Positions 1 to 55,953 of a stretch of 64,000 nt of DNA are shown here, one piece after another. Source of the DNA: Blepharisma stoltei ATCC 30299 (lineage: Eukaryota > Protista > Ciliophora); NCBI GenBank assembly GCA_965603825.1, contig CBFDEM010000030.1, positions 1 through 64,000 on the forward strand, written 5' to 3'. Position 1 is the first letter of the stretch. The number at the start of each line of letters is the position of its first letter. Made by a program: the position numbers and the translations under genes. The notes beneath the pieces were generated by a model. The model saw nothing but the letters and a program-made list of their open reading frames with translations, was not told the origin of the DNA and made no database searches.

Positions 1-3000
1 AACACCCTAACACCCTAACACCCTAACACCCTAACACCCTAACACCCTAACACCCTAACACCCTAGACACCCTAACACCCTAACACCCTAACACCCTAAC
101 ACCCTAACACCCTAACACCCTAACACCCTAACACCCTAACACCCTAACACCCTAACACCCTAACACCCCTAACACCCTAACACCCTAACACCCTAACACC
201 CTAACACCCTAACACCCTAACACCCTAACACCCTAACACCCTAACACCCTAACACCCTAACACCCTAACACCCTAACACCCTAACACCCTAACACCCTAA
301 CACCCTAACACCCTAACACCCTAACACCCTAACACCCTAACACCCTAACACCCTAACACCCTAACACCCTAACACCCTAACACCCTAACACCCTAACACC
401 CTAACACCCTAACACCCTAACACCCTAACACCCTAACACCCTAACACCCTAACACCCTAACACCCTAACACCCTAACACCCTAACACCCTAACACCCTAA
501 CACCCTAACACCCTAACACCCTAACACCCTAACACCCTAACACCCTAACACCCTAACACCCTAACACCCTAACACCCTAACACCCTAACACCCTAACACC
601 CTAACACCCTAACACCCTAACACCCTAACACCCTAACACCCTAACACCCTAACACCCTAACACCCTAACACCCTAACACCCTAACACCCTAACACCCTAA
701 CACCCTAACACCCTAACACCCTAACACCCTAACACCCTAACACCCTAACACCCTAACACCCTAACACCCTAACACCCTAACACCCTAACACCCTAACACC
801 CTAACACCCTAACACCCTAACACCCTAACACCCTAACACCCTAACACCCTAACACCCTAACACCCTAACACCCTAACACCCTAACACCCTAACACCCTAA
901 CACCCTAACACCCTAACACCCTAACACCCTAACACCCTAACACCCTAACACCCTAACACCCTAACACCCTAACACCCTAACACCCTAACACCCTAACACC
1001 CTAACACCCTAACACCCTAACACCCTAACACCCTAACACCCTAACACCCTAACACCCTAACACCCTAACACCCTAACACCCTAACACCCTAACACCCTAA
1101 CACCCTAACACCCTAACACCCTAACACCCTAACACCCTAACACCCTAACACCCTAACACCCTAACACCCTAACACCCTAACACCCTAACACCCTAACACC
1201 CTAACACCCTAACACCCTAACACCCTAACACCCTAACACCCTAACACCCTAACACCCTAACACCCTAACACCCTAACACCCTAACACCCTAACACCCTAA
1301 CACCCTAACACCCTAACACCCTAACACCCTAACACCCTAACACCCTAACACCCTAACACCCTAACACCCTAACACCCTAACACCCTAACACCCTAACACC
1401 CTAACACCCTAACACCCTAACACCCTAACACCCTAACACCCTAACACCCTAACACCCTAACACCCTAACACCCTAACACCCTAACACCCTAACACCCTAA
1501 CACCCTAACACCCTAACACCCTAACACCCTAACACCCTAACACCCTAACACCCTAACACCCTAACACCCTAACACCCTAACCCTACACCCTAACACCCTA
1601 ACACCCTAACACCCTAACACCCTAACACCCTAACACCCTAACACCCTAACACCCTAACACCCTAACACCCTAACACCCTAACACCCTAACACCCTAACAC
1701 CCTAACACCCTAACACCCTAACACCCTAACACCCTAACACCCTAACACCCTAACACCCTAACACCCTAACACCCTAACACCCTAACACCCTAACACCCTA
1801 ACACCCTAACACCCTAACACCCTAACACCCTAACACCCTAACACCCTAACACCCTAACACCCTAACACCCTAACACCCTAACACCCTAACACCCTAACAC
1901 CCTAACACCCTAACACCCTAACACCCTAACACCCTAACACCCTAACACCCTAACACCCTAACACCCTAACACCCTAACACCCTAACACCCTAACACCCTA
2001 ACACCCTAACACCCTAACACCCTAACACCCTAACACCCTAACACCCTAACACCCTAACACCCTAACACCCTAACACCCTAACACCCTAACACCCTAACAC
2101 CCTAACACCCTAACACCCTAACACCCTAACACCCTAACACCCTAACACCCTAACACCCTAACACCCTAACACCCTAACACCCTAACACCCTAACACCCTA
2201 ACACCCTAACACCCTAACACCCTAACACCCTAACACCCTAACACCCTAACACCCTAACACCCTAACACCCTAACACCCTAACACCCTAACACCCTAACAC
2301 CCTAACACCCTAACACCCTAACACCCTAACACCCTAACACCCTAACACCCTAACACCCTAACACCCTAACACCCTAACACCCTAACACCCTAACACCCTA
2401 ACACCCTAACACCCTAACACCCTAACACCCTAACACCCTAACACCCTAACACCCTAACACCCTAACACCCTAACACCCTAACACCCTAACACCCTAACAC
2501 CCTAACACCCTAACACCCTAACACCCTAACACCCTAACACCCTAACACCCTAACACCCTAACACCCTAACACCCTAACACCCTAACACCCTAACACCCTA
2601 ACACCCTAACACCCTAACACCCTAACACCCTAACACCCTAACACCCTAACACCCTAACACCCTAACACCCTAACACCCTAACACCCTAACACCCTAACAC
2701 CCTAACACCCTAACACCCTAACACCCTAACACCCTAACACCCTAACACCCTAACACCCTAACACCCTAACACCCTAACACCCTAACACCCTAACACCCTA
2801 ACACCCTAACACCCTAACACCCTAACACCCTAACACCCTAACACCCTAACACCCTAACACCCTAACACCCTAACACCCTAACACCCTAACACCCTAACAC
2901 CCTAACACCCTAACACCCTAACACCCTAACACCCTAACACCCTAACACCCTAACACCCTAACACCCTAACACCCTAACACCCTAACACCCTAACACCCTA

Positions 3001-3147
3001 ACACCCTAACACCCTAACACCCTAACACCCTAACACCCTAACACCCTAACACCCTAACACCCTAACACCCTAACACCCTAACACCCTAACACCCTAACAC
3101 CCTAACACCCTAACACCCTAACACCCTAACACCCTAACACCCTAACA
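1..3147 (+). repeat. Telomeric repeat array (CCCTAACA)n, chromosome end
   Basis: Near-perfect tandem 8-mer CCCTAACA from base 1 to about 3147; this is the known heterotrich (Stentor/Blepharisma) telomere unit. Variant units at ~61-69, ~166-170 and ~1575-1587. Confidence 0.98.
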
Positions 3148-27711: not shown

Positions 27712-30700
27712 TTAGTTGCCCAATTTTTGAAGTATTCTTGTCGCATATTTCATGACCTGTTGATCTTTATGATGCAAGTATCCTTCTATAACTGACCGAA
27801 TATTCAGCCGCTCAAATTCTTCTTTACACTGGGGATAAACACACAAGTTCCCTATTGAAAACAAAGCGACTTGCCTAGGCGACTGCGATTGGGCTTGGTC
27901 GCTTCTGACAACCTCCAATAGCTGCTTTAATGCTCCGTGTCTTATTAAATCCATACACAGCAAATCAGAATTCCTTACAAGGTTTCCCAATGCCCCAGCT
28001 GCATTTGCCCTCGTCTTTTCTTCTTCATCGCTTAATAAATCCACTAGCAAAGGCACGCAAGGTCTTAAGTGCTCATATAATTTCTGATTATGGAACCCTG
28101 CATTTCCAACAGCAAAGCAAGCGAATTTTCTTGTGGTCCTATCTGGGTCCTTGCAGCAGTTTATAGCGCATGCAATAAGCCCATGCTCTAAGATATAATC
28201 ATAGAAGAAGGCTGAGTGCCGGCAAATATTCCCTATCAGGTTGCAAACTTTGCTTCTCACAGTTGATTCTCGATGCTCTATGAGTTTTCTTAAGTCTCCA
28301 TAAATGTTTTCATTGTGAATTAGCTCATAGTTTTCTCGCTGTAGCCTCGCTAGTTGGCTTATGAGAGATAAAATATCGACTAAGAGATGGGTAGGGTTGT
28401 CTTGGGCGAGAAGGTTGTATTGACTTATAATATTCATACCTCCTGCGTTTACAAACTGCTGGGCAAATGGCTTGGAGCCATCTGTATTCACTATCATTTT
28501 CGATAGCAATGAAACTGCGATCCCCAAGTGCTCTCTTGACAGGAATTTCATAATATTTAGCGTTGAAGTTATAATCTCAGAGTCAGCACATTCTTTATTG
28601 AACTGTTCGAGCTCCTTTGCATAGTTTTGCATGGAGTGTGGCAGGTTAAAAATTCTTAAAACCTGAGCAATAATAAGGTTGACTGCACTTGGCCCACCTC
28701 CGCACACAACTGGCCATTCTTGGATGCTGGCAAGCTGGCTTTCTTTCAAATATGATGCTAAAACTTTGATGATGCCGTCATGAATTAGAGTCTGCAAGAG
28801 GACTCTGAACTGCTCATAAATTGCATCATGAATAAAGGTTAAAAGCGAAATCAGTCCTTTAGGGGAAATTTCACATTTGGCATTCAGACCATTGATGAGC
28901 GTCACAATCAGTGCTGGGACTCCAGACTGATTAAGCCCCATAATGAATTCTCTAACATTGTCGTTTGCAATTGATTTCGCGAGCATCCTTTGCAGAAGCA
29001 AAATAATCCCATCAGAAAAGCCCATAAACAAACACCCATACCCTGACCCTTCAATTCTCTTAACTTCCTCTTGTCTGTTATTTCTCGGGGTCAGAATTTC
29101 TACAATTATTGAGAGAGATGCAGGTGTTGACAGTCTCTGCATGATCATATCAACGTGCTTTGGGCTTCCGCTCTGCAGTATCTCTGACAGTAAGCATGCA
29201 GAGCTCATAGCAATTATGTAAGATTCTTGAACCAGGCAATTTTCTTCAAATGACTCTAATAGGTATCCTACATCAACTTCAAGGTCCAAATTTTTCCTCT
29301 TATAAGCTGCGATCTGCTTTAGCATGTGTGTCAAGATCTGCAGAGAAATCGACGCAAGTACTGGATCTGGATTTGAAATCAGCCCATAGAGCAGATTCAT
29401 CGCTCCTTTGTGAGGCAGCACGACGTCGACAGCGTCTCTAGAAATCCTCATCATTTGTAGTAGGACCCTTAAAACTGACAGTTTCGTGACATTACCTTCG
29501 TCGTCTGAGTTAAAGATCTGAACTAAGCACTGGAGTCAGTCAAATTGGTTAAACGCTTTCCACACAACTTGTCTGAGGTTTTCGAAGAAGTGGAAATTTG
29601 CATTGTAGTCGTCAACAAGTTCGTTTCGGCCTCCGCGCTTCCAAGGAAAAGGAATCACATCTCCGCTTGAAGGGTGGATGATAACTTGGATGGCTTGGAT
29701 CGCTGATTTGTGGAGCGAGCTTACACCTTGAGAGATCCCTTGCTTTATGAGCAGACAAATTTCATGCAAAGTGTTGGTTTCTATTATGTCTGTATAGACA
29801 AAAATGCATCTGAGTGGGATTAGTCCTGCTTGGTTTAGGATAATTCCGACTGATTTTACAGTGTTGACTTGTAGCAAAGTCATTGCTTGGTCTATATTAC
29901 AGTTTGAGCCTGGGCCATTTGGGTAGTACAGCAGTTGAGGTACCAGCACAATAAAGCCTTTTACCATATTTGGCTCGATGCCTAATGATTTATTGAAGGT
30001 AGCTCTTGCAATCAGCCCAGCTGCTCTTACAATTTCAGATACCATGTCTGTCAATACTGGCGCAGGCGATCCTTGATCAAGTCTAATGCATCGTTTTATT
30101 AGTCCAATTAGTCCACTAGTCAACGCTGCAGACTTCAAAATGTCTTGGTTTGGGTCTTCAAGCTTAGCTTTGGATACAATCAAAATTATCGCTCTCAAAG
30201 CCGAAATTATATTGTTTTTTCTGTCCTTTGCAGTCCTGAAATCAGCATTCATTTGGAACAGCGACATCACTCTGTCAAGGAACTGTGCATCATGTCTAAG
30301 CCTTGTAGCCCCTGCTTCATCACTAGCCATAGTTTCATATCTTTGCCAGATATCTGATCCTTCTGATACAGATGCAGCTTGCTTTTTAGGGGCTGAGTCA
30401 GATAAAGGGTGCTCAATCCCAGCCCATTTCAGATATTTATTAGTCCTGGACTCTCTGGCTAGTTTTTCTTCGCTGGTTTCCCTTATAAATGGGTGGTTCA
30501 GTAAATCAGGCCACGCAAGTCTTTCTTGGGGAGCTTTATTGAGCAGTCCTTTCAGGAAAGACTTGAAGTCAGGGTTCATGTTGTCAGGGAACTTCACAGG
30601 ATCTTTCACAATCAAATTGATCAAAGTGTATATAGAATTCGTATAAAATGGAGGCTGTCCCACAAACAGCTCATAAATAATGACCCCCAAGCTCCACAAA

Positions 30701-31245
30701 TCTGCTGTGTGGTTATATGGCAGCTCTTGTACAAGCTCTGGAGCCATATATAGCGGAGTACCTTTAATGGAAGTCAAAACTATTGTGTTTGAGCTCATAG
30801 CTCTAGCGAACCCAAAATCACATAGCTTAACTGTCCCGTTCGCAGTAATCAAAATATTCTGTGGCTTCATATCTCTGTGAATAATCCTATTGCTATGTAA
30901 ATAATGTAGCGCAAATACCAGCTGCTGAGCGATTTTTCTTACTTCATTTTCTGGCAGATTTTTATCATCTTCTAAAATTTCAAAAAGCTCTCCTTGTCCA
31001 AACTCAGTAACAACGCAAAACTCGTGAGGAGTTTCAAAGGTATCAAGCATAAGAATGATATTTTCATGATGCAGCCCGCGGAGGATGTCGATTTCTTGCC
31101 GGAGATTTGATAAATCTTTTTCTGTTTTTCCACGCTTGGTAATAAACTTTAAGGCTACGATCTGGCCTGAGAATTTTCTTCGGCCTTTGAAGACCTTGCC
31201 GAATGAGCCTTCTCCGATGGGATGAAGCACGTGATAGTTGTCCAT
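27712..31245 (-). CDS. STK36: Fused/STK36/TIO-type Ser/Thr kinase with C-terminal ARM repeats (1177 aa)
   Basis: [50 protein letters not shown]; C-terminal [31 protein letters not shown]. The two ORF-track fragments are in frame across TGA 29536. Confidence 0.93.
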
Positions 31246-32510: not shown

Positions 32511-34370
32511 ATGAGTTTCCGCGAAAATTTGCACGACCAATTCGAACTAGTTCACAATCATTGTCTACACAGGCGGAAGGGAGGAGAAGAATTCATTCAG
32601 CTGCTTAAAGAAAGGGCACAGCATGAAGAGTCATATGCAAGAGGTTTGGAGCGATTAGGAAATCATCCATATTTTGTGACCAGCCAAGGCACCTTGTCTC
32701 ACGCTATCTCAGCAATGAAAAATGATAACCTGAATAAGGCCATGCAAGCTAAAATACTAGCAGAAAGCATTACCAATGACTTGGTCGAGCCTTTTAAAGA
32801 ACTTTTAAGAAATCAAGGAAATACCCTTAAAAAAGCAAGTGCAGAAGGGAAAAAACTTGAAAAGGACAAAGCAATGCTAAAGGAAAGAGTTGAAAAATCT
32901 AAAGGGAGGTATGTCAGAGCATGCATGGAATGCGAGCAGCTCACAATTTTGCTTGAGCAGCCAATCCCTCAAGTGAAAAGGGAAAAACTCGTACAAAGAT
33001 TGATTCTGAGCAAGAAAGAAGTAGAAGACAGCATGAAGCAGAACATTGAGGCTGTCAATGCTTATAATTCCTATCAAACCCGTTATTGTGATATGATGGC
33101 TATGATTCTTGAAATTTATCAAAAGCAAGAAGAGCAGAGGTTGGAAGCTATGAAGGACTCTCTGAGGAAACTGGTAGTTTACGAGACTAGCTGCTTAAGG
33201 AATCTACAGTATGATATTGATAATTTGGCTCATTCCATGGAAAGTGTTAATATTCAAGCTGACATCAACCAATTCATTGATGAAAACACTTCAAATAATC
33301 CTAAAATGATCTTATTAGAATTTGAGCCTTACCAAGGAACTCATCCATCATTTAAAGAAGTAAAGCATAATGCACCCATTGTGACGATTCCACATAGCAT
33401 CACCACCAGCGACTCTCAAGCTTTAAATGCTCTACAAGACGTGTACAAGTCCGAAATCAGCAATATTTTACAGAAAACCTGAAACGCGGAGAATCTTTCG
33501 CCAGAAGAGTTCCATCAATTTAGAAATATAATCAAAGATCCTTCTGCAAGACAATGTTTTACTTCTGTTCTCGGCCAGAAAAAGACACAAGGAGATGTCT
33601 CTCTCAGTGAAAAAAGCTTCGAACAGATGGGAGAACTTCTACTAGTAGTCCTCAACGAATGTGCCTTAACCACTGATATAAGAACCTCCAGAAACCTCAT
33701 CCAGCTTTCACAAGTTTTCCGCAAAGCCCAAGGATCACCAAACGCCCCGCTTGAGTATTTGCAAAATCTTATTATTTCGCATTCTATATGAGCAAGTATG
33801 GAGTTCTGGGAAGGAATTATTCAGTCTGCGATTGATGAAGATATACAGAGTCATGAAGTGTACGGTCTTCATGAAAATGAAACTCAGGAATCAATTGAAA
33901 ATCGCATTAAAAATATCGTGTTTTGTCAGCTGGGGGTGTTTGGAAATACTATGCTAACTTTTCAGGTTGACACTATGTATGCAGCTGAGCTGGTGTCGAA
34001 ATATGCGTGCAAGTACCAGTTGAGCTCAGAAGATATGGACACCTTGATGGCAACGATTGATAAAAAATTTTCTGCGAAGACAGATAAAGAAGAAGAGGTC
34101 GTCCAGGAGGTCCAGAGGGGTGTGCCAAAATGGCTACATGAACTGGAAGGGGCAACTGCAACTATGAATAAGAGGATAAAGAAAGATAATAAAGTTAATG
34201 AAGAAAGTAAAACAGAGGAGCATGAAAACCCTGAAGAAACGTACAAACAAGCTGAAAATCCTGAAGAAACAAATAAAACTGAAGAAATAAAAGAAAGTGA
34301 TTCGCTTGAAATAGTTAGGGAGGAGGTAAGCAAAGAGGAGATAGAAAAAGAGGCTGAGCAAGAGCCATAA
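32511..34370 (+). CDS. F-BAR (FCH) domain protein with SBF2-like C-terminal domain and acidic tail
   Basis: SFRENLHDQF..LLKERAQHEESYARGL (FCH), YQKQEEQRLEAMKDSL (F-BAR), HSIW[TGA]ASMEFWE (SBF1/2-like motif); one frame through two TGA codons. Confidence 0.8.
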
Positions 34371-34437
34371 TTAATTTCATTAAATATCGAAGAAATCTGT
34401 TTGGATTTTAATTAATTAGGGTTGTCAAATGAATAAT

Positions 34438-34442
34438 AAAAA
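34438..34442 (-). terminator. Pol III oligo-T terminator of tRNA-Sec
   Basis: TTTTT immediately 3' of the discriminator base on the minus strand. Confidence 0.75.
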
Positions 34443-34529
34443 CGCTCAGAAGGGCGAATCGAACGCCTGAGGCGCTAGCCTCCCTAGGATTTGAAGTCCT
34501 AGCCAGGCACCAGCCCAGATCATCCAAGC
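34443..34529 (-). tRNA. tRNA-Sec (anticodon UCA)
   Basis: Reverse complement GCTTGGATGATCTGGGCTGGTGCCTGGCTAGGACTTCAAATCCTAGGGAGGCTAGCGCCTCAGGCGTTCGATTCGCCCTTCTGAGCG (87 nt). It has a 9-bp acceptor/4-bp T stem, a 6-bp D stem with UGGU loop, a 6-bp anticodon stem, a CUUCAAA loop, a long variable arm GAGGC-TAGC-GCCTC and a G discriminator. Confidence 0.95.
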
Positions 34530-34552
34530 ACTATTTTAAGACGTTCCGCATG

Positions 34553-34559
34553 ATATATA
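34553..34559 (-). promoter_or_regulatory. Putative TATA box about 30 to 24 nt upstream of tRNA-Sec
   Basis: TATATAT at the spacing where eukaryotic tRNA-Sec genes carry an upstream TATA element; the AT-rich background lowers certainty. Confidence 0.5.
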
Positions 34560-34863
34560 CATTGAATTTTTGACTTAAGATAATTAATATACTTTATATT
34601 TACGATTAAGATAAAATTTTATAAATCTACTGCCTTATTTAGAAAGCGAAAAATATTACCTTGTTTTAATGCTATATATAAACCACCACACAAAATACGG
34701 CCATAGACTTAGTAAATATATTAAATAACTATATTTCCTATGAGAATCTTTAGCGATTAATTTTAGTTTTTCTTTCTTTTGTATTAAACTCCAGAGTTAG
34801 TTCCATTGGTTAAAAGCTTTTAATTAAAACTTTTTTATATCAAAAGATTATATAGAATGCAAA

Positions 34864-36627
34864 ATGGTTGAAACAGAACCAAATTCGATGATAAAAGTCA
34901 TGCAGGATGAACTATTGCCATTAGTTATTTCCTACATCCGCCAGAAAACATATCCTTTTCTAATTGAAGATTTTTCTAAACTTGCTTCATATTCATCTTT
35001 GACGTGTGGAGAAATCGAATCTATTTGATTAAAAATATCTGACTCACAGCTTCCTACAGAAATCATAGAAAAACTCAGCACATTGTGCAGCTGTGCCTTT
35101 TTGATGAAAGCTTCTTATGACTCAGATTTTACCTCTAAAATTGCTAAAAAGTGCTTCGCAACTCTTCAGACTCTAAAGAAACAAAATTTTAAAATCGAAG
35201 AAGTTTCTGAAGACATTTCAAATCAATTTATTACCTGCATTCTAAGTTCACAAAGCTTTCAAGAGCTCTCTGAGTGAATAATATTTATAAATCAATACTC
35301 AATGAATTTCTCTGATTGCAGACTTGCTAAATCTGCTTTGGAATTCAAGTTTAAAGCTCTATCATGAACTCAGCTCTCAACTACAGATTTCAGTTCTCTT
35401 ATAGCTCTTCTCTCAGAAATTAATAAAGCCTCACCCGAGCACTGAGATTTCCAAGACCTTGCCCATATTCTCACTATCCTCGCTCTTAATCTAATTGAAA
35501 ACAATTTAAGCAGCACTGACCAATTTATAAACTCTCAAATATCCAAATGCCTGAGATATCTCCAAAGTTTTGACTACCTAGATGAGCCTTTAAAAGCAGA
35601 AATCAATGAATTTATCCAAATTAAAGGCACTGGAAGCTCTACATCAACTGCTATTAATTTAACAGAAAATGGCGAAAATGAAAGCCAAGGCAAGTTTTCT
35701 GATGAAGAAATCAAAACATTTGGGATTATTGATAAGTGAGGAGAAAAGCTAGTCATACAAGAAACTGACTGGATATACTTTTTACGGAAAGGAGACAACA
35801 ACTCAATAGCTGTTTTGAAAGCCAACTTGAGACTTGATAATGGGGAATCCAAAATCGTTGCAGTAAAATATTATAAATCGACTGAAAGAAAATGGCTGCT
35901 TAATTATCACACAGAAATTGAAATATTAAAGAAACTCAGCGACACAAGGCATAAGGCTTTTCTGCAGCTTTATGGGTCATTTATGGATACAGTAGTAGAA
36001 AATGAAAGAGAATATCACAGACTGAATATAATCATGGACTATTGCCAAAAAACTCTTATGAATGACATTGATATGAGAAAAAAAGAAGGTAGGAATTATA
36101 CTCAAATTGAACTATGGGACGCCATCAAGCAGCTAATTGAAGGCTTTGCAGTGCTATCAAATATGAAGATCTACCACCAAGACATCAAGCCACACAACAT
36201 TTTAATCTCAGACGATGTCTATAAAATCTCTGATTTCAATGTAAGCAAGACTACTAATGGGATAACGACAATAACAAAAGAGGCAACGATACAAGGAACG
36301 TCTGGATATTTCTCTCCTGAGCTCCAAAAAGCATTTAATGACTATAAATCGAAAAATGGGCCAAGCAGAGTTAAATTCAACCCTGGAAAGTCTGATGTTT
36401 TCTCTTTAGGCTTAACAATTTTGCAAATGGCAAGCTTAAAAAGTGTGATCGACCTGAATTTGCCTGAAAACCAAAGTGACTTGATCAATAAAATAGAAAA
36501 TCTACCTTATGATGGCAAAGTAAAGGATATTCTAAGAAGAATGATGATTTTGGACTACCACCAAAGGCCTAGCTTTATACAGTTGGTATCTTTGGTGACT
36601 GAAGAAAATACAGTCCGCTGCGAATAA
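34864..36627 (+). CDS. Divergent Ser/Thr protein kinase with helical N-terminal region (587 aa)
   Basis: ATG 34864, in frame through several TGA codons with a kinase domain: VAVKYY, YHQDIKPHN, ISDFNVSK, GTSGYFSPE, KSDVFSLG. Confidence 0.85.
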
Positions 36628-43209: not shown

Positions 43210-44820
43210 TTAATGTATAGCATCATGCAGCAGGTAGTAGGTTGCTGTAGCATGATTGAGTTCATTGCAGTTTAATGAATTCAAGACAAAACTTTTTGGG
43301 AAACCACAAGCCACCACTTTTTCTAAGATGAAATCATCAACTTTGAATCTTTTTTCTCGAGATGGCTCGATGTTTCCTATAAATCGTGGGGATACACTTT
43401 CTTCTTCAGTTTCATCAGAAGATCGGAATCATGGATGCCTTAGCAAAGAGTCCAATGGGATCCTGTTGTGTGGGACAAGCTGCAGCATACTTCTTATCAT
43501 ATCCTTGGCATTTTCACTTAAATAGTCTGGCAGATTGTATTTTCCTGTCAAAATCAGCTTGTTTAGCTCTGGAATACTGTGAGCCTTAAAGGGAACAGTT
43601 CCACACAGCATTGCATACGCCAAGATTCCTAAGCTTCACATATCTGCCCAAAATCCTTCATAACCTCTATCTACAATGATTTCAGGAGCTAAATAAGCTG
43701 GGGTTCCGCATTGCTCATTGATTATTTGTCCTTTTTTTACAAGCTTACTTACCCCAAAATCACAGATTTTACAGCAAGAATACTGTGAATCTAATAAAAT
43801 ATTATCAAGCTTGAAATCTCGATGCAAAACCCCATTTTCGTGGATTTCTATTGCACCTTCAATAATTTGTCCAAAAATTCTCCTAGCTTCATTTTCTGTT
43901 AACCTCCCTTTTTGCTTTACAAATTGCAATAAATCTCCACCCCCTGCATATTCCATGACAATCAAAAAATGCTTCGAGCTTTCGAAAACCTCGAAAATTT
44001 TTACCACATATTTGTTTCTGATTTTTTTCAAAATATACACTTCTTGGAATACTTTTCTCTTTGCGTGCTCATTCCTTAGCTGAGCTTTTTCGATAGTTTT
44101 AATTGCTACGTTCATTCCTGTCAGCTTATGGACACCTAGCAAAACCTTTCCAAAAGCACCTTTTCCTATCATTTTCCCAATTTTATAAAAATCTAAGGTT
44201 GTTGGCGGGTCGTCTAAATGTTTGCCAAAGTAACTTGAAATATAGCTCACCAGTTTTTCCTTTTCTTCTTCTTGCTCTTGAAAAGACCCTGCAGAGACAT
44301 TTAGGTTTTCATATAAGTGTGTTGGTGTGTGTCTTTCTTGCAACAAGCTTTGGTTTACTTCTATCAGAGATCGGTCGTTTTTAGAATTTATTGGAGTATT
44401 TTTTTGAAAAGAATTATTTCCATTTCGTCTTGATACTGAGCGTATCTTGAAGATACTGCTTATTTTATCCGAAACAACTCTTCTGTGTCCAGGTTTTGAG
44501 GTTTGTTTAGGAGTTAGCTCAGGACTTCGTGCTGGAGTCCGAGATTGTCGATCAGGAGTGATCTCCTTTCAGCCTTCGATTCTCTTCTTTACATATTCAT
44601 GAAGGTCTTTGTGAGCTGGGGGTTGAATTTCAATTGCAAGATTTTTAATTATTCTTGTTGTGACTGGGCTGGTCTTCTCGCTCTTCGAAATTCTACGTCC
44701 CTCATCTTTACTAGAAATTCTGATGCGATTGCCAACCTTAAGGAATTCTTTTGATGCTTTTGAAGCTGGCTCAGCGAAGTCTTGGCTAGATCCATGAGCC
44801 CTGATTTTCCTTTTAAACAT
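43210..44820 (-). CDS. CAMK-group (SNF1/MARK-like) Ser/Thr kinase
   Basis: IGKGAFGKV, HRDFKLDN, CDFGVSK, CGTPAYLAPE, ADMW[TGA]SLG, HPW[TGA], C-terminal NHATATYYLL; fragments in one frame from ATG 44820 to TAA 43210. Confidence 0.9.
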
Positions 44821-52739: not shown

Positions 52740-54194
52740 ATGGGTTGCTGCAACTCAAAAGTTGACTCTCCAGAGAAAAAGCCAAACCCAAGTCTTCCTC
52801 TTCCCAAGGCTAAAAAAAGCTTTAGTAAAGCTGACTTCGTTTCTCAAAAGAAAGGCTCAGCCGAAGAATATTATACAGTCTTGAAAAAGTTAGGAAGCGG
52901 AGGCTTTGGGACAGTTTATCAAGTTATAGATAAGCGGACAGGCATAGAAAGAGCCATGAAAGAGCTGCCGAGATCTAAAATGACTCAAGAAGCAAGTGTC
53001 CAGATGCTTTCTGAGGTCGAAATTTTACGTAACTTAGACCATCCTAATATCATGAAAGTTTATGAGCTTATCGAGTCAAAAAAAAGTTATTTCATTATAA
53101 CTGAGTTTTTAACTGGCGGCGATTTGTTTGATAAAATTGTGAAAAAGCAAAACTTAAGTGAAAAAATCGCAGCTGAATATGCATATGGGTTTATGAGTGC
53201 TATTAATTATTGCCATAAAAATGGTATTGCCCATAGAGATTTAAAGCCTGAAAATCTGCTGCTTGAAAGCACAGAGCCAAATGCCAAAGTAAAAGTTATT
53301 GACTTTGGAATTTCTCAAAAAATCCAACCAAACCATAAGCTTAGACAAGCTGTTGGGACAATTTTTTATATGGCGCCTGAGACTTTTGTAGGGTCTTATG
53401 ACGAAAAATGCGATATATGGAGTGCTGGAGTTATTTTGTATATGATGCTTTGTGGGTCTCCACCGTTTTATGCTGAAAAAACTGAAGATATGCTTCAAAT
53501 TATTAATAACGGCAATTTAGAATTCAAAGAGCCAGCTTGAAAATCAATATCAGAGAACGCCAAAGACTTAATCAGAAATATGTTATCTGTAGATCCAGCA
53601 CCAAGATATAGCGCTGAACATGTATTAAACCACGCTTGGTTTAAAAGCTACATCAGCGATGAGCTTCCTCAGACTAAACTCAGCATTGAAGCTTTAGGAA
53701 ACCTCAGCAAATTCCATGCCCAAGGCAAACTTGAAAAATCCATTATGACCTTCATAAGCTCACAAATAACTAGTATCCAAGAAGACCGAGAATTTGCAGA
53801 TTTATTCAGTAAGATGGACAAAAATAAGGACGGAAAACTGAGCCAAAGGGAAATTTTTGATGGTTATAAAGAGCTAGGGATCACAACACCGCCTGGAATA
53901 TCAGAAATTTTGAAGAAAATCGATAGTGATGGAAGCGGTTTTTTAGATTATACTGAATTTGTGACAGCTTCTAAGGACTGGAAGAAAGCTTTTGAGAAAA
54001 ATGAGCTTGAAAGTGCCTTTAAAATCTATGACCAAGGAGGAGATGGCAAACTATCACTTAAAGAGCTTAAAGATAGTATCCCTGATATAGAAGAGTCTGA
54101 GTGGGGAAAATTTTTAGCTGAAGCTGATGAGAATGGGGATGGGCTGATTGGCTTTGAAGAGCTAAAAAGCTATTTAATGCAAAAAGCAGCTTAA
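52740..54194 (+). CDS. Calcium-dependent protein kinase (kinase + 4 EF-hands), N-acylation motif
   Basis: MGCCNS, LGSGGFG, HRDLKPEN, IDFG, EPAW[TGA]KSISENAKDLI; EF-hands DKNKDGKLS, DSDGSGFLD, DQGGDGKLS, DENGDGLIG. Confidence 0.94.
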
Positions 54195-54603: not shown

Positions 54604-55953
54604 ATGGGAAAAGATAAAATACATGTAAACATTGTAGTTATAGGACATGTCGACTCAGGCAAGTCCACCACTTGTGGCCATCTTATCTACAAGTGTGGTG
54701 GGATTGACAAAAGAACAATTGAAAAATACGAAAAAGAAGCATCCGAAATGGGAAGAGGATCATTTAAATATGCATGGGTGCTTGACAAGCTTAAAGATGA
54801 AAGAGAGCGTGGGATTACAATTGATATTTCCTTGTTTAAATTCCAAACTGACAAGTTTTACTTTACTATTATTGATGCTCCAGGACATAGGGATTTTATC
54901 AAAAATATGATTACAGGCACCACACAAGCTGATATTGCTTTACTAGTCATCGCAGCTGGCAAAGGTGAATTTGAAGCTGGGTACTCAAAAAATGGCCAAA
55001 CAAGAGAGCACGCCTTATTAGCTTACACCCTTGGAGTCAGACAAATGATAGTAGCTGTCAATAAAATGGATGACAGATCAGTAGAATGGTCTGCCATCCG
55101 CTATAATGAAATCAAAGACGAAGTAAGCACTTATCTAAAAAAGGTTGGTTACAACCCTGCTAAAATTCCATTTATCCCTATTTCAGGATGGCTCGGTGAC
55201 AATATGATAGAGCCTTCAGCCAATATGCCATGGTATGCTGGCCCAACCTTAATTGGAGCTCTTGACAATGTAATTCCTCCAAAAAGACCATTTGATAAGC
55301 CTCTTAGACTCCCAGTTCAAGATGTATATAAAATATCAGGAATTGGTACAGTCCCGGTTGGCAGAGTTGAAACTGGAGTTTTAACCCCTGGGACTTTCAT
55401 TACTTTTGCTCCTTCAGGAATCCAAACTGAAGTGAAGTCTATAGAAACGCATCATGAAGAACTGCAGAGGGCTGAGCCTGGAGATAGTATAGGGTTCAGT
55501 ATAAAGAATGTCGCTTTTAATTTGATTAAGAGAGGATACGTAGCTTCTGATAGCAATAATGATCCTGCTAGGGAAGCCTCTGATTTTACTGCTCAAGTGA
55601 TTATTATGAACCATCCTGGACAAATAGCGGCTGGCTATACTCCAGTCCTAGACTGTCACACTTCACATATTGCATGCAGATTCCAAGAACTAAAGCAAAA
55701 AGTCGACAGAAGGTCTGCAGCTGTTTTAGAAGAAGAGCCTAAGTTTCTCAAGACTGGAGACTCCGCCATTGTAAATATGATACCTACCAAGCCTATGTGC
55801 GTTGAGGCTTTTACTGAATACCCACCATTGGGAAGATTTGCAGTCAGAGATATGAGACAAACTGTGGCGGTCGGAGTTATTAAATCAGTTAATAAGCTTC
55901 ATCCAGGACAGCTTAGAGCTGCTATTGGAAAGAAAGGCCAAAAAAAGAAGTAG
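54604..55953 (+). CDS. EEF1A: Translation elongation factor 1-alpha (somewhat divergent copy)
   Basis: [60 protein letters not shown]. Confidence 0.96.

Follow-up and report, generated by a model that had tools for sequence, protein, structure and literature searches.

Blepharisma stoltei ATCC 30299 carries a single nuclear gene for tRNA-Sec(UCA), and UGA in this ciliate would have two meanings, Trp and Sec, which are sorted by the 3' UTR of the mRNA and not by the codon. We assign this reading as a whole a probability of about 0.93. The gene lies in a contig stretch of 64,000 nt, referred to here as the window. It is genuine, and it is present in one copy. Dual Trp/Sec decoding had been proposed in an initial annotation of the window, and the proposal is supported by the presence of the Sec machinery, by ten genes that combine a UGA codon with a SECIS element, and by a tRNA that has no tRNA-Trp features. 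It should be noted that the gene, its uniqueness, and the idea of Trp/Sec decoding are all already known for B. stoltei (bioRxiv 10.1101/2023.10.09.561518).

Identity and fold of the tRNA-Sec gene

The sole tRNA called by ARAGORN in the 64-kb window was tRNA-SeC(tca), located at 34443 to 34529 on the minus strand (87 nt including the discriminator G; anticodon at 34492 to 34494). The same interval matched Rfam family RF01852 over the full model (positions 1 to 91) with 75.6 bits and an E value of 1e-13, the gathering cut-off of this family being 47 bits. In the Rfam alignment and likewise in an MFE fold, the acceptor stem comprises nine positions, of which eight are paired and one, position 8, is a U.U mismatch. 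The D stem has 6 bp and a loop of 4 nt, the anticodon stem 6 bp and the loop CUUCAAA, and the variable arm 5 bp and the loop UAGC. A T stem of 4 bp completes the 9/4 arrangement with its 13-bp acceptor/T helix, and the discriminator base is G (G73). These features are of the Sec/Ser type, and none typical of tRNA-Trp were present.

Two flanking signals were read from the sequence. A run of five T residues (34438 to 34442, minus strand) abuts the discriminator and, by its position, would serve as the RNA polymerase III terminator. Upstream, TATATAT at 34553 to 34559 (minus strand) occupies positions -30 to -24 from the 5' end of the tRNA and represents a putative TATA-like promoter element; vertebrate tRNA-Sec genes typically have a TATA box at -30. 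The structure described in the initial annotation (9/4 fold, 6-bp D stem, long variable arm, UCA anticodon, T run, and TATA) was reproduced by ARAGORN, RF01852, and the MFE fold, and its interval of 34438 to 34559 brackets the T5 run, the tRNA gene, and TATATAT exactly. Positions 1 to 3147 of the window hold approximately 390 copies of the telomeric repeat CCCTAACA and represent a contig end.

Copy number and conservation

Whether further UCA tRNAs exist had been raised as a point to check. In an RF01852 scan of the whole genome (41.46 Mb, 64 contigs), 34443 to 34529 was the only locus above the cut-off, and the next-best matches genome-wide were tRNA-Ser and tRNA-Leu. A single tRNA-Sec locus is also what has been published: tRNAscan-SE and ARAGORN revealed no second nuclear UGA-cognate tRNA in B. 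stoltei (bioRxiv 10.1101/2023.10.09.561518 supplement). The same supplement lists Contig_36.trna4 (34529 to 34443) of strain ATCC 30299, with a length of 87 bp, SeC as its type, TCA as its anticodon, and a tRNAscan-SE score of 97.8. Its sequence and coordinates are identical to those of the gene described here, with zero differences; it is the same gene. A tRNA-Leu(TAA) at 344074 on this contig also matches its position in that supplement, and the window accordingly corresponds to the initial 64 kb of Contig_36. From a different contig, a tRNA-like RNA that is well expressed and whose anticodon may be UCA has been reported (bioRxiv 10.1101/2023.10.09.561518 supplement), so tRNA-Sec is perhaps not the sole UGA-cognate RNA. 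YAMAT-seq data have been published for B. stoltei (bioRxiv 10.1101/2023.10.09.561518).

The locus was compared with four public sequencing runs, three of which contain it, all of them DNA assemblies. In another strain, all differences fell outside 34443 to 34529, and in a second species the differences were likewise confined to the sequence outside these positions. In a third and more distant organism (run X10), the alignable part was just 34434 to 34568, with unlike sequence on both sides. The alignable part includes a block of 39 nt upstream of the tRNA (34530 to 34568, minus strand), beyond which the sequences have diverged. This pattern supports purifying selection, which would act on tRNA-Sec together with approximately 39 nt of its upstream sequence.

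UGA as a tryptophan codon

In Blepharisma, UGA has been reported to specify Trp only and not to act as a stop. According to published work, its decoder is tRNA-Trp(CCA), a near-cognate tRNA whose anticodon stem has 4 bp. Direct evidence within the window comes from a protein kinase gene at 43210 to 44820 (minus strand), which carries TGA at the Trp of the DxWSxG motif. In a local alignment, ADMxSLG of this kinase is matched by ADLWSLG of the kinase at 27712 to 31245, and the Trp of this motif is near-invariant; judged from the alignment, TGA would be read as Trp here. Paralog pairs elsewhere in the genome have TGG opposite TGA at the same position. Among eleven confident genes of the window, TGA accounts for 17 of 65 Trp codons (~26%).

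The genes that flank tRNA-Sec had also been described as using TGA at Trp positions. An ORF scan with TGA read through returned a left ORF at 32511 to 34370 (plus strand; 619 codons) and a right ORF at 34864 to 36627 (plus strand; 587 codons, with a kinase-like C-terminal half). In-frame TGAs are indeed present in reading frames that are otherwise open, two in the left ORF and five in the right; no alignment to a conserved Trp was obtained for the TGAs of these two ORFs.

Selenocysteine machinery

The initial annotation had named eEFSec, SBP2, SepSecS, PSTK, and SPS as genes to look for. All five are encoded in the genome, PSTK being a probable assignment. SepSecS (C40) was matched with 423 bits and SelD/SPS (C13) with 214 bits; the active site of the latter holds Cys, and the enzyme is of the Cys form. 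eEFSec (C14) was identified by its similarity to human eEFSec (E value of 1.7e-132) and by the Pfam domains euk_SelB_III and eEFSec_4th, both of which are eukaryote-specific. The probable PSTK (C5) matched archaeal PSTK over its full length with an E value of 2e-8 and is distinct from the true KTI12; the match is weak (29 to 37 bits), making it the weakest of the five assignments. A gene for SBP2 of 306 aa (C53; 1363 to 2280 of the extracted piece) matched the RNA-binding domain of human SBP2 with an E value of 1e-20.

The B. stoltei SBP2 is shorter than its human counterpart of 854 aa, and the match between them is limited to the L7Ae-type RNA-binding domain. An EF-Tu-family GTPase gene within the window (54628 to 55608; 454-aa open frame) surfaced in the selB search and is not eEFSec.

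Selenoprotein genes and SECIS elements

Ten selenoprotein genes were verified, each with a UGA at the Sec position and a SECIS element. This number is a lower bound, as the five-gene SECIS model R2 (see below) was applied to only 150 of the 24,918 candidates from a first look. UGA occupies the family's known Sec site in GPx, TrxR, two SelW genes, and SelM. An HMG-SelW fusion, a PUB protein, two membrane proteins, and a 49-aa protein were assigned by motif and SECIS. Sec is internal in GPx, with TGA where seven paralogs carry the catalytic Cys, in the two SelW genes (CGSUGY), in SelM (CSGU), and in the fusion protein, which comprises 243 aa with an N-terminal HMG box and a C-terminal SelW-like CGSUGY (SECIS at C35:719452-719503, minus strand). 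It is the second-to-last residue in TrxR, which ends in GC-U-G, in the PUB-domain protein, which ends in GG-U-R, and in the two paralogous membrane proteins (C12 and C25) and the 49-aa protein, all three of which end in U-R.

The occurrence of TGA at catalytic Cys/Sec sites, which had been suggested as a check of the initial annotation, was thus found in genes such as GPx, TrxR, and SelW. Both MsrB genes were rejected as selenoproteins because they use Cys. The SelT-like and SelH-like Rdx genes were also rejected; they encode Cys instead, and the TGAs that they contain are aligned with Trp. Pfam searches for SelS, SelK, and SelO gave no match, and no Pfam family matched the C12 and C25 membrane proteins. 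Selenoproteins had been expected to be hidden, since annotation writes W at their UGA codons. The supplement of Swart et al. 2023 reports the same, for example, for GPx, and describes selenoprotein genes that are mistranslated with Trp and have long SECIS-bearing 3' UTRs (bioRxiv 10.1101/2023.10.09.561518). GPx is the one selenoprotein named there, and the publication is without a list of Sec machinery or SECIS features.

The short 3' UTRs of the window had raised the question of where SECIS elements might fit. In all ten genes, the core of a SECIS-like hairpin begins 13 to 27 nt past the stop codon. MFE folds exhibited the expected features, namely a UGA/GA kink-turn core, helix 2, and an unpaired AA 11 to 12 nt after the core. 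The sequence of all ten cores is A[A/U]GUGA, as opposed to the usual AUGA. When the elements of five genes were aligned, 91.9% of cells were paired, compared to 41 to 54% in slid controls, and changes on both sides were observed in 11 of 15 pairs, demonstrating covariation.

The Rfam SECIS models returned nothing at the GPx locus, the one tested, even at E values of up to 10. MAFFT misaligned SECIS sets of two sequences, and a covariance model built from a single SECIS was too specific, yielding 12.7 bits only for the SelW SECIS and missing that of TrxR. With the five-gene covariance model R2, the five genes used for training were found again, together with one that was new, the HMG-SelW fusion. 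Three more R2 matches (C44, C36, and C30:360739) were rejected, as they were without a matching ORF.

Sorting tryptophan from selenocysteine

The need for a sorting rule, anticipated in the initial annotation, proved to be real. The C25 membrane-protein gene (approximately 53,500 to 53,970; 151 codons) contains a TGA at codon 35, which is aligned to TGG (Trp) of its C12 paralog, and another TGA at the Sec site, codon 150. Both meanings of UGA most likely occur in this one mRNA, as far as can be judged by comparison of the paralogs. Internal Sec codons are located 227 to 382 nt upstream of their SECIS, and the distance between the codon-35 UGA of C25 and its SECIS is similar. Since a Trp-aligned UGA is about as far from SECIS as internal Sec codons are, distance alone cannot sort the two meanings.

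The five genes with C-terminal Sec share a module that consists of UGA, one codon, UAG, NNC, A[A/G]AAGAUUG, and a SECIS with its GUGA core 35 to 36 nt after UGA. In the extracted pieces, it is located at 1492 to 1600 (C33, C25, and C41) or 1422 to 1530 (C54 and C12). A stop-proximal search pattern was derived from two of the five module genes and did not contain the SECIS distance. Genome-wide, it returned seven matches, compared to none in the reversed control, and five of the seven had a SECIS at the same distance. For the other two (C14 and C48), neither an ORF nor a SECIS was present, and these matches are probably fortuitous. The motif of the module forms a 5-bp hairpin from the G of UAG in both TrxR and PUB, with compensatory changes in the stem. 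The stop codon is UAG in all five C-terminal-Sec genes and UAA in the five internal-Sec genes.

The five internal-Sec mRNAs are without the module, and the Sec codon is the sole UGA in each of them. Avoidance of Trp-encoding UGA in selenoprotein coding sequences was not significant, with 0 of 7 Trp codons being TGA in the internal-Sec genes versus ~26% in the window genes (P ~0.12). In Euplotes and mammalian TR1, SECIS has been described to restrict where Sec is inserted, namely to the C-terminal region (PMC3737529). We tentatively suggest that Blepharisma may employ two contexts of Sec recoding, a C-terminal module which would confine Sec to one UGA and internal-Sec mRNAs without the module, although we consider it rather unlikely that this distinction holds. 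Confinement of Sec to one UGA would explain how the upstream UGA stays Trp in one such mRNA. If true, the two contexts would amount to a sequence-defined positional rule that sorts Trp from Sec.

Proposed mechanism and alternative explanations

Gene anatomy and the standard eukaryotic pathway suggest the following mechanism. The tRNA-Sec gene would be transcribed by RNA polymerase III from the upstream TATA-type promoter, with termination at T5. Seryl-tRNA synthetase would charge the tRNA with serine by way of the long variable arm and G73, and the serine would be converted to selenocysteine by PSTK and SepSecS, with SPS as the source of selenophosphate. The acceptor/T helix of 13 bp (9/4) is predicted to permit eEFSec only and to exclude eEF1A, and SBP2 on the SECIS of the 3' UTR would recruit eEFSec to the ribosome. 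As a result of this recruitment, reading of UGA by tRNA-Sec would be limited to roughly a dozen selenoprotein mRNAs. The remaining UGA codons would be translated as Trp by the published near-cognate tRNA-Trp(CCA).

No other nuclear tRNA with full complementarity to UGA is predicted; tRNA-Sec might instead have been repurposed as an ordinary UGA-Trp decoder, a role in which TrpRS would charge and eEF1A deliver it, and two cytosolic TrpRS paralogs have been reported in B. stoltei (bioRxiv 10.1101/2023.10.09.561518 supplement). However, one gene copy is unlikely to cover tens of thousands of UGA codons, a complete Sec machinery and SECIS-bearing genes are present, and the published Trp decoder, with its 4-bp anticodon stem, is tRNA-Trp(CCA). 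The fold of tRNA-Sec is moreover of the Sec type throughout: the 9/4 helix, 6-bp D stem, long variable arm, and G73 are determinants for SerRS, PSTK, and eEFSec and disfavour eEF1A. We consider repurposing to be extremely improbable. That the gene is a relic, unused or barely used while selenoproteins are being lost from the lineage, is very improbable as well. Most GPx, MsrB, SelT-like, and SelH-like genes encode Cys and SPS is the Cys form, as might be expected from such a loss, but ten genes retain a Sec-site UGA and a covarying SECIS (covariation on five), the five machinery genes are all intact, and tRNA-Sec is invariant in relatives in which its flanks are variable.

A functional tRNA-Sec that shares UGA with tRNA-Trp is hence the explanation that we favor. 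It might need to be refined, not replaced, if sorting were leaky, that is, if Sec-tRNA and Trp-tRNA competed at Sec-site UGAs and gave rise to Sec/Trp mixtures. The distances are compatible with such leakage, as internal Sec codons lie 227 to 382 nt from SECIS and one Trp-aligned UGA is similarly far away. On the other hand, Trp at a catalytic site would mean a dead enzyme, and selection should therefore minimize leakage. We regard leaky sorting as possible but doubtful.

Comparison with known systems

The tRNA-Sec gene would assign a second amino acid to UGA in a genome which already reads this codon as Trp, and it would explain why genes that are automatically translated with Trp at UGA, as noted for GPx, encode selenocysteine there. 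No new principle is involved, both points having been published for B. stoltei and related protists. The practical value of the present analysis lies in a checked list that covers the genes of the Sec machinery and ten selenoprotein genes, the latter together with their SECIS.

Vertebrate tRNA[Ser]Sec, as represented by the human sequence, shares with the Blepharisma gene the 9/4 fold, the U.U at the eighth acceptor position, the 6-bp D stem, and the 4-nt D loop. The CUUCAAA loop, the UAGC variable loop, G73, and a TATA element near -30 are also common to both, whereas the variable stem has 5 bp in Blepharisma and 6 bp in vertebrates. In Condylostoma magnum and Parduczia sp., heterotrich and karyorelict relatives, UGA specifies Trp, stop, and Sec, and a tRNA-Sec(UCA) is present (PMC4967479). 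Their TrxR genes carry a UGA just before the stop codon, and the SECIS is nearer than the minimum of 51 to 111 nt proposed for mammals (PMC4967479). The distance between UGA and SECIS is likewise short in TrxR of Blepharisma (36 nt). In contrast to these two organisms, in which UGA is also a regular stop, it has been reported to be Trp only in Blepharisma.

Double use of UGA for Trp and Sec has been published for Blastocrithidia, and the C25 gene of Blepharisma resembles SelTryp of that organism (PMC12153298). Blastocrithidia is, however, a trypanosomatid, and SelTryp belongs to a different protein family from the C25 membrane protein. In Euplotes crassus, UGA specifies Cys and Sec, with Sec insertion depending on position (Turanov 2009 as cited in PMC12153298; PMC3737529). 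As in Blepharisma, one codon stands for two amino acids, sometimes within a single mRNA, and in E. crassus the SECIS and 3' UTR restrict Sec to the C-terminal UGA (PMC3737529). The two ciliates differ in the meaning of the ordinary UGA, which is Cys via a cognate tRNA-Cys(UCA) in Euplotes and Trp via a near-cognate tRNA in Blepharisma.
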